Position numbers and translations under genes: made by a program. This document shows positions 2,988 through 8,734 of a DNA stretch of 64,000 nucleotides, one piece after another (position 1 is the stretch's first letter; each line of letters begins with the position of its first letter). The notes beneath the pieces were generated by a model. It was not told where the DNA came from, searched no databases, and was given only the letters and a program-made list of their open reading frames with translations. Source of the stretch: Ophelia neglecta (Eukaryota); contig OZ260663.1 of assembly GCA_965285935.1 (NCBI GenBank), positions 79,608,001 through 79,672,000 of the forward strand. Direction: 5' to 3'.

Positions 2988-3968
2988 TCAAGCAGAGTAT
3001 ACCACACTGCTAGTATTATACCCACCGGTCACAGGCTGTTCAGCCACGGGCGTTGCAATACCAAAACCCGCAATGAAAGCGTTGATTATAAACACTAAGT
3101 ACAACAAATAATTAATAACATGTTGCCAAAAACTCACGGATTTCAACACACGGTTTTTTCGTATGGCGTCTGTGTATTGGAACAGAATTTGCCCTTGTTC
3201 TCTTATGACTTTTTCTTTTACAAAGAATTTTTCCATACTTTTGGCCTTTTCCTTTTCTTCTGCAATTTGGTCTTGAAGGTTTTTCAGTTTTATACCGATT
3301 TCATTTTTCCTTGTCTCTGAGGATTCTGATTTTAGCTCGGCTTCTAAAGTTTTCACATCCAGCTTGGCAGTGTCTATCCTTAGTCGTATCCGAGAAAGCT
3401 CCTGTTGATATTGGACTATCGAAAGCTGGCTCCTCACAGACTGTTCACACCAGACGTCATATCTGTCTAAAATGTCATATTCATACGCAGGGTGCGTACG
3501 CTTGGTAACAAAGCAGGGACATTTTGGACAACAACCAGGTTCACCTTCGCCGAATTCCGCTTCGTTGTCCAAAACAACATTATCTGCTGCCAGCATGTTC
3601 CATTTCCCTAAATCTAAACCAAATTCGTTTTCTCGAATGAGTTTCTTTATTCGTTTTTCTCGCTTCACCCGACTTCTGCTTAGGCAATGGAAACCACAAA
3701 CATGCTCAAAAAATTCCTTGCACAGTTCGTCACGGTACTGGTCATAGTACTGACGGATATTAACTATAACAAGAGTGGTCAGCCCAATGATAAACTGGAG
3801 TACCAGTGCAATGGATATCAAACTAAGACTGACATGGTAGTACCGTGAAGAGTTCCCTCTATCGATTACTTCCTTCAGCAAGGTTATATGAACTATTGAC
3901 ATGGCTGTAGTTGCTGTAAACTGGGCCTTGTCTTTGGACGCTGCCAAAGTTGCCTTCTTTTGTTCTAC
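2988..3968 (-). CDS. NINJ: Ninjurin-family membrane protein with a long insertion between TM1 and TM2; coding exon 2 (last, 981 nt including stop)
   Basis: Ungapped by-eye match to human NINJ1. LLKEVIDRGNSSRYYHVSLSLISIALVLQFIIG matches QLKAVVEQGPSFAFYVPLVVLISISLVLQIGVG, and FWQHVINYLLYLVFIINAFIAGFGIATP matches FLNNLATGLVFIIVVVNIFITAFGVQKP. Acceptor ttcttcaaccaacctgttag|GTAGAA puts the exon start at 3968, in frame with the ORF-track ORF, whose TTG start at 3947 is not the true start. The symbol is family-level only; orthology is unresolved. Confidence 0.9.
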   Translation of the reverse strand, partial: VEQKKATLAASKDKAQFTATTAMSIVHITLLKEVIDRGNSSRYYHVSLSLISIALVLQFIIGLTTLVIVNIRQYYDQYRDELCKEFFEHVCGFHCLSRSRVKREKRIKKLIRENEFGLDLGKWNMLAADNVVLDNEAEFGEGEPGCCPKCPCFVTKRTHPAYEYDILDRYDVWCEQSVRSQLSIVQYQQELSRIRLRIDTAKLDVKTLEAELKSESSETRKNEIGIKLKNLQDQIAEEKEKAKSMEKFFVKEKVIREQGQILFQYTDAIRKNRVLKSVSFWQHVINYLLYLVFIINAFIAGFGIATPVAEQPVTGGYNTSSVVYSA

Positions 3969-4081
3969 CTAACAGGTTGGTTGAAGAACAAAATTATAAA
4001 TAAACATATATAAAATAAGTATTTTACAATTATTGGTTATATCAAATGAATATGCACATGGTAAAGTCAAAATTAACATAC
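3969..4081 (-). other. 113-nt GT-AG intron (phase 0) of the ninjurin-family gene
   Basis: GTATGT donor, AT-rich body, pyrimidine tract and TAG acceptor; reading frame is preserved across it. Confidence 0.8.
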
Positions 4082-4135
4082 CTCCTTAACGGCCAGCTCC
4101 CCAGACAATATGACGTTGTTTTCGGTGTTGTCCAT
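4082..4135 (-). CDS. NINJ: Ninjurin-family gene, coding exon 1 (MDNTENNVILSGELAVKE)
   Basis: ATG at 4135, 18 open codons, then donor GAG|GTATGT at 4081. The phase-0 join to exon 2 gives a 344-aa protein. Confidence 0.8.
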
Positions 4136-4198
4136 GCTAATATAAAGGTTATCCATAAGTTTTGTCAGCTCCTCTGTTATTCAGGATATCTAATGTAG
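4136..4198 (-). other. 5'UTR part of the ATG exon, preceded by a splice acceptor
   Basis: Minus strand reads tcatttcattctccgatttcag|CTACATT, with the AG at 4200-4199. This implies at least one further upstream non-coding exon. Confidence 0.55.
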
Positions 4199-5280: not shown

Positions 5281-7317
5281 TCTTGGTTCATATTTACGTA
5301 GTACTTTTAAACACAGACATGCACATTATATGTGCTTTGCTGCATTGTGCGTTTACCAGATGCGAATGTTACCAGAAAGGAAGATGCGGCATTTGTCAAC
5401 TTTTGCCCGCCTAGCTTTCCAGCGTTTTCTGAATGGAGGGGCAGAACGGATCCGTTTAATGGGCATAAATGTGGCACTGGTCATGCTTATTTAGTCATTT
5501 GAACTTTTCCGGATCTCGGCAGTCATGTGCATAACGTGATTACAAAATTACATATCTATATACATGTATACATATATTTAGAATATCAATATACAGTGCC
5601 CTTCCGGTTATCCTAACTCTAGGTGGGAGAGAGAATTAGTTCGTTTAATCGCGAGGTCGGAAAAACAAGAGAATTAATGGCCTTCCATCCTATAAAATGA
5701 TATTGTTTATTCATGACAAATTGTTAAAAATAATAACATTGGCGTATTATGCATGTACCAAATAGGTACTTTGACATTTTATAAGTCATGACTGAAATAG
5801 GGTCACAACGTACAGCAGATAATTTTACAATAAAGTTGCCATTACTTGCAGTCACACATAGCGTCCTCTGTGTCTCCTTGTCCGAAATCTAGTCTAGCCG
5901 CATATAAGGACGCCCCCGGGTGTAAGTAGGCGTAAATACAAGACTGTCCTGGGTCATGACATACACAGAGCAAATCGGGATCTTCACATTTTACGGCCTT
6001 TATAATCATGCTATGTTGAATCAACAAGTAAATGTGTTGCGCGTATTTTAAGCGGCCCTTTCATGCAACACCAGCAATGTAGTGGCTTGAAAGATACACA
6101 ATCAAACGTATTAATAACTAAAACAGGTGTATCCCTCGATACGCCGATTTAGTTTTTTTCATAATAAATCTTGGAATTGTACTAAAAGTCTCATCTTATT
6201 ACATGTGGACTTCAAATAATATACAAAAATTAAATGCGTGTACTTATTTTCTGTAAATTCAAACAAAATGTAGTTTTCATAAATATTTATTTAACAAGGA
6301 AGTAGCGTGCTAACTGGACACTGTATGATAGTTCATTATTCTAGAAGTATCTATGTATATATAAAGCACCATTCAAACTTGCACTGCTGTGAATTTGTTG
6401 TCGCAAAATTCATGTTTCATGTCAAAGGCACAAGCTTGGGTTGTGTCTTTCAATTTCTGTTCTTTTTTATTAATCGAGTAAGGTCTGATGATTGTGCTCT
6501 TATTTCGCGATAATGTAGTCTGTTAGCTGGCCTTCGAATTATTGACCCATAGCCGGACGACTACGAAAAAACATGGTCAAAACACATTCCAAAGCTGTCA
6601 AGAATGGCGATCGTAAATCATTGCATCTTGATTCGGGTAGGCCATACTTGGATGTGTTTCGACACGAAATTCTTTGTTCATATCATGCTTATTTTATGCA
6701 CACCGAAAGCTGGGAAAAACCCTCTTTTATCTCAACGGCCAGTTTTGGCAAGGCTTTCCTGTACGGTGACTGCCAAGGAAGCCTATGCCAAACTTATTGC
6801 TATCCCAAGCCCTCTCTTATGATATATAATTAAATACAAACTATTTCGGGAACGTGCTGAAATGTCGAGCAACTAACCGTTAGGTCCCCCGACTGCAAAT
6901 ATCTTGATAAAGGTCCGTTCGCTTCGTTCAACCTGTTTCTCCTTACAGAAGATTACCCAAACTGTTGTTTGATTGTGTACATGTATAGTGAATTTATGTC
7001 TATTCATCATATAATGAATAACATTTCAAATGCAACAAATGATAAGATCACATAACAATAAAAATAAAGACGGCAAACCAAAACGGAGATACTTTTATAA
7101 CCAAGTCAAACTAAATTATGTGATATCGCACAGCAGTTAGGAATAGAGCCCAAGTAAATAAATTTGTTGAAGCCCAACATATACTGACAAGTCACAGACA
7201 TTAACAGTAAAAAAACACAAGGATATAGCAGCGACAATATTTTTTTTTTTTTACAAACCTAATTGTCAATTTTTTTTCCAAATAAATGCAAGAATTGTTT
7301 TTTCAAAGACCTTCTCA

Positions 7318-7406
7318 CCTCCCCCCACCCCAACCCCTCCCGCCACACACCCCACACCAACCCCTCCCGCCACACACCCCACCCCCTACCCCTCACCTCA
7401 CCCCCA
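7318..7406. repeat. C-rich low-complexity tract with a duplicated ccaacccctcccgccacacacccc unit (G-quadruplex potential on the minus strand)
   Basis: Many C3+ runs, and the ~27-bp unit is present twice. Confidence 0.8.
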
Positions 7407-8734
7407 TAACAGCTAACTAGGTGACATTTTATATTCCTTTTTTGTCAATGTCCATGTGTGTACTTCTCAATCTAAGTTAAAAGTAGTTTAGGCTGTAGAT
7501 GGTCTTGTTTCTAAAGGTAGCATTAAACCCACGAGTTACTACTTCATGTAGCACTTTATGTAAACAATATGAATATTAGTAGTGATCATCATCGCCTGTC
7601 AGAGGGATATGGAATTACTGAACATGTTACACTATCCGATCAGTGATCTAATACTTAAAAGTTTAATGTACAATGTCACAAGCCCCTTTCTAAAATAAAA
7701 TCCTCGACGTTGTCTGCAGTACATGCCAAAGAAGCACGGTCAGAGAGAAAACACACTTATTAATTAAACAATAATATCTTGGGTGCTCCAGTAACTTCCC
7801 CATTGTCGATGGATTGTTCAGAAGAGATAAATATTATCAAGCTGTTATCGAACATTAATTAATGGAATAGGAACTTACACGTTCGATTTTTAGAAATCAT
7901 GAAACAAAAAGCCCCTCGAATTGATTTACTAGTATTTAAAAATAATAATGTTTTATTTAGATTGTATACGATTTAAAACAATACATGGCCACGAGAGATA
8001 TTTACATTGCAAAACAAACCCCTTTGTCTGAAAAAGGATTACAGCCAGGATCGTATCTGGTTTTTATAAAAATTTAATAATTATTTTAATTAAGATATTT
8101 ATTAAACTTTTAATTTAATATATAGTAGAACTTGGGGTAACATCCACACCAGCATTGTTTTGGTGGCAATGGGTTTCGTTATTTGGCAGCTAGGAAAAAC
8201 AACTGGTTAAATTATCTTGTCCGAGAAAATTGGACACATTTTATGACGCACACGGTGTCGAAGTGGGAACATGACAAAAACTCAATATAAGCTATTCTCA
8301 AAAACATCGAGGCATTGCTGTTATGCTCGTTTTAAACTGCATGAATAATAAATATGTAAACAAGTTAAAATGGATGTAATATGCGATGTTAATATTCTGC
8401 CCTGGACATTTTTCGTTTACAAAAAAAAAATCCCAAGCCCAGGAATGGTATTTGTGTTTAAGTAGTGTTGTTTGTTTTTCAGGTGGGTAATCCTAAGTCT
8501 CAGTGCGAAGTAGTAACACAGAAATTCAAGTAACATAGCAGGTTTTAAGTAAGTACACTATGTTCCATGTTTGAGTATCTGAGCAATCCATTACTACTCT
8601 AAGTAACTTCATGGTAAGTTATTCACATGCCTAGCAGGAAGATCCAAGGCAGGATGGATAAGCACAGTGCATGGAAAAGCCATTTTGATACCATGTCCGA
8701 CATCCTGCGTCTTTTTCTCATTACCAATTATCAT

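Follow-up and report, generated by a model that had tools for sequence, protein, structure and literature searches.

A ninjurin subfamily with a long, probably cytosolic module between its two membrane helices

Introduction

The DNA considered here is a 64,000-nucleotide (nt) stretch of the genome of Ophelia neglecta (contig OZ260663.1, positions 79,608,001 to 79,672,000 of the forward strand), which we call the window and whose positions are used throughout. On its minus strand, between 2988 and 4135, lies what reads as an intact two-exon ninjurin gene with about 200 conserved residues between the membrane helices of its product. To our knowledge, all ninjurins studied so far have a minimal cytosolic turn at this place; a tight alpha3-alpha4 turn of 12-16 residues is common to all described members and is the feature that the window protein lacks. 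One member, NINJ1, forms a filament of alpha3/alpha4 hairpins and executes plasma-membrane rupture, and the trigger of its polymerization is debated (PMC12547243). Below we describe the gene, its relatives and the predicted architecture of the additional module, and discuss how such a protein may work.

Locus and Gene Model

Exon 1 opens with an ATG at 4135 and runs for 18 codons, the last two being AAG GAG, to a gt donor at 4081-4080. Past the ag acceptor at 3970-3969, the minus-strand translation has no stop over 326 codons, which begin at 3968 and are closed by a TGA at 2990-2988 (Table 1). Reading the sequence in this way gives the product of 344 amino acids (aa) over two exons that an earlier note on this DNA, made from the letters alone, had described. 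The frame of exon 2 is the longest open reading frame (ORF) of the window by more than twofold, the runner-up having 144 aa. All searches and structure predictions were run on the exon-2 protein (2991-3968, minus strand), which also sets the residue numbering.

The same beginning is found in relatives. The 18-aa peptide of exon 1, ending in GELAVK[EQ] and followed immediately by GT, is also present upstream of two paralogs in this genome (L002 and L003) and of L008, the closest relative from another assembly. A homologous N-terminus is present in a Capitella protein and in the protein P0004, and the position of the first intron is common to the window gene and the Capitella teleta locus L010. 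In L009, a transcript-like public Logan contig of a relative with a 5' leader, an ORF and a 3' trailer, the homolog of exon 1 is fused to the body of the protein and the entire insert is kept. An alternative in-frame ATG lies at 4154-4156 (minus strand), seven codons upstream of 4135, and would add MDNLYIS. The start was kept at 4135 because the ATG at 4156 is not conserved in L002 and L003 and stands in a weaker sequence context; these paralogs keep only the Met that matches 4135 (the -18 position).

Table 1. Coordinates of the gene and of the segments of its product (window positions; residues of the exon-2 protein)
Feature	Positions	Strand	Description	Basis or remark
Exon 1	4082..4135	-	ATG + 17 codons, ending in the conserved SGELAVKE, then gtatgt donor	Sequence read
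Intron	3969..4081	-	113 nt, gt..ag, phase 0	Frame shifts from exon 1 to exon 2; stops inside the intron
Exon 2	2988..3968	-	326 codons + TGA; whole ninjurin core and insert	
N-terminal amphipathic helix (alpha1/alpha2 equivalent)	3849..3944	-	Residues 9-40, aligned to NINJ1 42-73	HMMER; AlphaFold2 helix 2-40
Membrane helix alpha3	3750..3842	-	Residues 43-73, with Q58 and G62	Hydrophobicity; NINJ1 alignment
Insert, part 1	3624..3737	-	Residues 78-115; Cys cluster C83, C91, C95, then basic helix	pLDDT 60-78
Insert, part 2	3489..3623	-	Residues 116-160; linker, poorly ordered and acidic in part, closed by the second Cys cluster and PAYEYDILDRYD	pLDDT 51-65
Insert, part 3	3138..3488	-	Antiparallel helical hairpin, helices 161-214 and 218-277	Second helix runs unbroken into alpha4
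Membrane helix alpha4	3054..3137	-	Residues 278-305, with F280, N296, I299, F302 and G303	
C-terminal tail	2991..3053	-	Residues 306-326; N-glycosylation sequon N318-T-S	
pLDDT, predicted local distance difference test

The Ninjurin Core

The Pfam family Ninjurin (PF04923) matches residues 9-86 with E 7.3e-09 and 35.9 bits, where the curated gathering threshold is 26, and 29 of 30 aligned family members match it as well. When all chains of the PDB were searched with phmmer, the only significant matches were ninjurins (NINJ1 and NINJ2), each in two ungapped blocks. With 9bia_B, query residues 15-69 align to NINJ1 48-102 and 278-311 to 115-148; with 8uip_A, residues 9-69 align to 42-102. A profile of the 30 family members likewise matches NINJ1 in two blocks (45-102 and 119-146, E 1e-10). 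The earlier note had claimed that both halves of the fold align to NINJ1 without gaps, and this is borne out for residues 9-69 and 278-311 against NINJ1 42-102 and 115-148.

Between the two halves lie residues 70-277 (window 3761-3138), about 208 aa that are free of stops and share their exon with both membrane helices, in agreement with the interval of 3761-3141 given earlier. The spacing of alpha3 and alpha4 is thus about 208 residues in the window protein against 12-16 in NINJ1. By hydrophobicity, two segments and no more are membrane-like, 43-73 and 282-310; the insert has none.

The residues that are equivalent to those of NINJ1 are K12 (K45), Q58 (Q91), G62 (G95), F280 (F117), N296 (N133), I299 (I136), F302 (F139) and G303 (G140). 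The motifs LQxxxG of alpha3 and NxFIxxFG of alpha4 are present in the window protein, and among 109 long-loop relatives that retain both membrane helices, Q58, G62, N296, I299, F302 and G303 are each kept in 76-98% (G62 in 98%, N296 in 97% and G303 in 93%). The comparison of structures for which the earlier note had called gave a similar picture: in an AlphaFold2 monomer model, the core (model residues 5..303) superposes on all 102 of the 102 resolved residues of the NINJ2 filament chain 8szb_F (Z 11.4, 26% identity), and Foldseek against the PDB matched 8szb_A and 9bia_A with template modeling (TM) scores by target of 0.52-0.57. Membership in the Pfam Ninjurin family is supported by all the sequence and fold criteria examined.

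A Conserved Family of Long-Loop Ninjurins

A search of the genome of O. neglecta found seven Ninjurin loci, of which four are long-loop, two short-loop (L001 and L005) and one fragmentary (L004). The four long-loop copies, which are the window gene (C5) together with L002, L003 and L007 (C12), all have uninterrupted frames of 309-328 aa. The short-loop pair resembles the window protein in its Pfam Ninjurin match, which covers the whole 102-position model, and in having two membrane helices, but differs from it by loops of only about 15 residues. Short-loop and long-loop copies score only 17-25 bits against each other in BLASTP, from which it follows that the long-loop genes did not arise recently from L001 or L005.

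Relatives outside this genome were sought with profiles among 1.84 billion cluster representatives, with 269 matches at E <= 1e-3, of which 30 reach E <= 1e-30. The retrieved proteins with both membrane helices are the 109 referred to above; their loops have 136-378 residues and none is short. Apart from the two short-loop proteins of this genome, the profile searches returned no canonical ninjurins, and the short matches are fragments of the type B described below that end at the intron after alpha3. The organism names among the matches are Capitella teleta and Intoshia linei only, most matches being without one; the named members are two hypothetical proteins of C. teleta and one of I. linei (A3Q56_00693). 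A cluster of short fragments in the ESM Atlas is mostly from Mollusca. With at least four intact genomic copies, relatives in Capitella and Intoshia, and 109 retrieved proteins, the earlier suggestion of a ninjurin subfamily, as opposed to a one-off or a mis-assembly, is well founded. We refer to what, judging by these sequences, is a distinct conserved subfamily as the long-loop ninjurins.

The subfamily falls into two types, which score only 40-70 bits against each other in BLASTP. Type A comprises the window gene, L002, L003, P0001 and the Capitella protein 186579, and type B comprises L007, L004, Capitella CAPTEDRAFT_205572 and the Intoshia protein. The presence of both types in Capitella and in this genome indicates that the two types, and hence the long-loop architecture, had arisen before these lineages diverged. 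Of the two, type A evolves much faster, with about 30% identity to Capitella, and is locally duplicated: L002 (52.47 Mb on C12) and L003 (53.03 Mb) are type A paralogs about 0.56 Mb apart, with 55-86% mutual identity depending on the region. Type B is much more conserved, L007 reaching 463 bits and 78% identity with Capitella 205572 and 93% identity with a protein in the ENA, and in many species it has an intron just past alpha3. The two type B loci of this genome lie at G000:C12:27629825-27633070 (L007) and G000:C12:28700887-28704081 (L004); the latter resembles L007 but is broken up into several frames, through introns or decay.

At the Capitella locus L010 (KB305422.1, 3001-4648), some 25 residues of alpha2/alpha3 are missing from the deposited protein CAPTEDRAFT_186579. 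They are present in the genome, QVIDQGKSS in one frame and then RYYEVSLAFLGISLIL past an extra intron, so the deposited protein appears mis-spliced. This may account for its want of a precomputed Pfam Ninjurin tag.

The proportion of nonsynonymous differences (pN) is well below that of synonymous differences (pS) in the insert of L002 and L003, at 0.244 against 0.706, similar to the core. In more distant pairs synonymous sites are saturated (orthologs have pS of 0.8-1.0), and the ratios of nonsynonymous to synonymous rates were discarded for orthologs; pN is still well below pS. These values support translation of the insert and purifying selection on it.

Predicted Architecture of the Insert

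The AlphaFold2 model of the window protein, built on an alignment of 30 sequences, has a mean pLDDT of 82 and a predicted TM score of 0.68. Its helices are 2-40, 44-78, 82-90, 98-115, 129-136, 161-214 and 218-301. Helices 161-214 and 218-301 are modeled at pLDDT 88-98 and form the hairpin, with arms of about 55 residues each, and the last helix is unbroken from the insert through alpha4. The model therefore predicts a rigid stalk that is continuous with alpha4 and has both Cys clusters near the membrane. A separate model of type B has the same order of elements, and the two types share the core, the juxtamembrane Cys cluster, the disordered linker that ends in an acidic run followed by GCC[PD][WF], and the hairpin continuous with alpha4.

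The Cys clusters are a family trait. In the first 35 residues past alpha3 the 109 members have a median of five Cys, with conserved Cys columns at 83-96. Family-wide, the loop contains 3.8% Cys (a median of eight per loop) and the tail 0.4%, and a CC pair lies within the loop in 92 of the 109. In the window protein the second cluster consists of C146, C147, C150 and C152, directly followed by the motif PAYEYDILDRYD. Multiply S-acylated Cys clusters are known from the linker of SNAP-25 and from the juxtamembrane CxxC of the LAT type, which serve here as a lead only. They resemble the long-loop clusters in packing 3-5 Cys into some 10 residues next to a membrane, on its cytosolic face and between two helices, and differ from them in that there is no sequence homology. 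One family member has a weak Pfam LAT2 match (E 0.0058).

Ser, Thr and acidic residues abound at the tip of the hairpin (residues ~212-220, window ~3309-3335), with SESSE in the window protein and TPESE in L002 and L003. Many relatives carry D/Q-P-x-x-[DN]-K there instead. The tip could be a phosphorylation or partner-binding site. A VVLD-type motif of the linker, hydrophobic and then acidic, was considered as a SUMO-interaction or caspase site; the alignment is too gappy there, and we make no claim for it.

Topology

An N-x-S/T sequon is present in the C-terminal tail of 76 of the 93 members whose tail has at least 8 aa, compared with 30.6 +/- 4.1 in shuffled tails (maximum 44 in 1000 shuffles). 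The tail has 3.06 sequons per 100 residues and the loop 0.28, a difference of about 11-fold. The mean net charge is +3.2 over the first 45 residues of the loop, +1.8 over the last 20 and -0.3 in the tail. This pattern of sequons and charge, an indirect line of evidence, is the one that a cytosolic loop and a glycosylated C-terminal tail in the lumen or outside the cell would give. The insert thus most probably faces the cytosol, and from the family-wide statistics we infer that both termini are extracellular and the C-terminal tail N-glycosylated. The same orientation is given for NINJ1 (PMC12547243).

Comparison with Known Proteins

The closest known systems are NINJ1 and NINJ2 (8uip, 8cqr, 8sza, 9bia, 8szb). 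They share with the window protein the Pfam family, the gapless amphipathic and membrane helices, the packing residues and the putative topology with both termini outside. The window protein differs, apart from its loop of ~208 residues in place of the 12-16-residue turn, in a C-tail glycosylation sequon that is conserved in the long-loop family. It also does without the long disordered N-terminus that bears the adhesion motif, having about 25 residues before alpha1.

The searches identified no known domain in the insert. In the window protein, Pfam at E <= 1 gave beyond Ninjurin only noise-level matches to Med9, BST2 and DUF7170. Scans of 30 members gave nothing recurrent except Ninjurin, and no signature of a sensor domain or protease site. 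The sole match of the insert in a sequence search of the PDB was a dynein stalk (E 0.23), and Foldseek against the PDB gave nothing at E <= 0.001. In the ESM Atlas, a shape search retrieved no long-loop cluster, and feature searches gave only short ninjurin clusters at scores of up to 0.80. VIA-align returned generic hairpins and NINJ2 only.

Among those hairpins, ESCRT-III CHMP4B/Snf7, PspA/Vipp1, moesin, Rad50/SMC and IpaB superpose on residues ~160-275 at 0.9-2.2 A over 74-115 residues with Z of ~10-12, and differ from them in identity, which is 5-16%, and in the absence of Pfam matches. As such Z scores are usual for any long helical hairpin, the likeness is one of shape only and speaks neither for kinship nor for ESCRT-like polymerization. 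Two specific assignments were tried and rejected. For a BAR or F-BAR fold, Foldseek gave E of 0.05-0.06 and TM scores of 0.36-0.42 at a root mean square deviation above 9 A, there was no Pfam match, and the best F-BAR row in the ESM Atlas had TM scores of 0.49 by query and 0.20 by target. For membership in ESCRT-III/PspA/Vipp1, no Snf7 or PspA_IM30 match was found in any of 30 members at E <= 0.01.

The earlier note had proposed that the insert is a cytosolic sensor, autoinhibitory or scaffolding module. Its cytosolic placement is favored by the sequons and the charge, but neither Pfam nor the fold searches found a recognizable sensor domain, and a scaffolding or regulatory stalk is a better fit than a sensor. 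A lytic activity of the protein, its gating and its autoinhibition are conjecture.

Other Features of the Window

Just downstream of the 3' end of the gene lies a dispersed repeat of high copy number (2571-2712). Its word depth in the DNA contigs is ~800-2000 compared with ~20 around it, and numerous contigs are broken at this place. Farther away, 7323-7394 is a C-rich tandem repeat of 27 nt in 2.6 copies, inside a block of strongly negative GC skew (-0.40 over 7001-7500).

How Long-Loop Ninjurins May Work

The explanation that we favor, and think somewhat better than an even bet, is that the window protein is a conserved long-loop ninjurin in which an acylated cytosolic stalk is coupled to an oligomerizing ninjurin core. 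Both Cys clusters would be S-acylated, and the base of the stalk would be pinned to the inner leaflet by lipid on one arm, the other arm being anchored by alpha4. The core would oligomerize in the plane of the membrane as do NINJ1 and NINJ2, and the rigid stalk beneath the membrane would couple this assembly to the cytosol. The stalks may then pack with their neighbors, hold the orientation of alpha4 or recruit partners. Rupture, adhesion or some other organization of the membrane may be the result.

The core might instead be a two-helix anchor, possibly of an organelle membrane, and the stalk a tether, scaffold or trafficking adaptor, in a protein that neither polymerizes nor lyses. A conserved ninjurin core is no guarantee of lysis, as human NINJ2 has one and is non-lytic (PMC12547243). 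The stalk of type B is about as conserved as the core, with many near-invariant hairpin positions and 78% identity to Capitella, which fits a partner-binding surface, and clusters of juxtamembrane Cys typically mark membrane proteins that are sorted and acylated. A mere anchor would, however, have no need of the packing core of NINJ1, and it is residues of this core (Q58, G62, N296 and G303) that are the best conserved over the 109 members; the N-terminal amphipathic helix, which makes subunit contacts in ninjurins, is also conserved, including the equivalent of K45. We judge this account possible but rather unlikely.

A third account assigns the stalk a gating role: the insert would keep the alpha3/alpha4 hairpin inactive until a cytosolic event frees it for polymerization and rupture. 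As a conjecture, the release might come from phosphorylation, from loss of the acyl groups, from a change in the redox state or metal of the Cys clusters, or from cleavage of the acidic linker by a protease. Lytic NINJ1 has Phe (F117) where non-lytic NINJ2 has Gln (Gln103) (PMC12547243), and the window protein has Phe at this position (F280), a weak pointer to lysis; the equivalent of K45 is kept as well. The exposed, disordered acidic linker between the two Cys clusters is a plausible site of regulated modification, and the lineage-specific duplication and fast evolution of type A are often met in immune effectors. Yet no protease-site or sensor-domain signature passed any test, and type B, with its high conservation, has more the look of a housekeeping gene than of an immune effector. 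A cytosol-gated lytic effector is in our estimation improbable.

Several points weigh against an acylated stalk on an oligomerizing core. Its Cys-rich regions are modeled at low confidence (pLDDT 51-69), and the clusters could bind metal instead. The two helices of the hairpin have no heptad periodicity above that of shuffles (Fourier analysis at period 3.5, p 0.22 and 0.74), for which reason we speak of a helical hairpin and not of a coiled coil; what supports this predicted element is AlphaFold2 confidence and family conservation, not a coiled-coil signature. The equivalent of D53 in NINJ1 is a Thr in the window protein, a further difference from NINJ1; we take the D53 contact to be important in the NINJ1 filament, and it may be lost here. 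S-acylation, glycosylation, topology and oligomerization are all things that we infer. A homodimer prediction with two copies of the exon-2 protein, run without controls, scored 0.00 and gave no verdict, and is evidence neither for nor against self-association. Lastly, the public sequencing runs found with the locus are three, from one sample, and all are DNA contigs, as their even coverage of the intron and its flanks indicates; they are silent on splicing.

That the runs are DNA and none is RNA leaves some room for an artefact, in which the insert would be a retained or unrecognized intron, or the copy an unexpressed pseudogene, with a short ninjurin or none as the product. The protein-level conservation of the insert across paralogs and phyla, with shared motifs and pN far below pS, makes this very improbable indeed. 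The same is true of the 326 open codons in AT-rich DNA in which the next ORF has 144 aa, of the transcript-like contig L009, which joins the N-terminal exon to the body and keeps the whole insert, and of the conserved gene structure.

In one of the runs (X3), a low-depth contig omits 518 nt (3506-4025); the skipped segment has non-canonical AA..TT ends, and the contig continues for 28 nt on one side of it. The other two runs are without the skip, which probably reflects faulty assembly or an uncommon structural variant, not splicing.

A more far-reaching reading would make the long-loop ninjurins membrane-remodeling or membrane-rupture proteins that are run from the cytosol. The acylated, rigid hairpins would be aligned under the ninjurin filament and form a second polymer layer on the cytosolic side, and modification of the Cys clusters or the linker would switch assembly. 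We regard it as a long shot.

Significance of the Long-Loop Architecture

The earlier note had seen in this gene a candidate for an undescribed system. Full-text searches of the literature on ninjurins, including invertebrate orthologs, yielded no description of the long-loop architecture, and to this extent the claim stands. The sequences themselves are not new: they are already public as hypothetical proteins tagged with PF04923, and since the window protein is also a member of Pfam Ninjurin it does not represent a categorically new system. What is new is the recognition of the architecture.

Ninjurins have hitherto been treated as proteins without a cytosolic face, given their minimal turn. 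An ancient, conserved branch that bears a large module, predicted to be structured, at this very turn indicates that the core fold can accommodate a rigid, cytosolic prolongation of alpha4 and that these animals make use of it. This suggests constructs with which ninjurin assembly can be probed, namely chimeras in which NINJ1 and a long-loop ninjurin each receive the loop of the other. Acylation of Cys is a candidate for the chemistry of regulation, and the invertebrate genes can be taken into studies of injury, infection and cell death. If cytosolic control proves true, the long-loop ninjurins would provide a natural handle on what triggers ninjurin polymerization; if they do not oligomerize, they would still be a case of a cell-death or adhesion fold redeployed as a membrane anchor.

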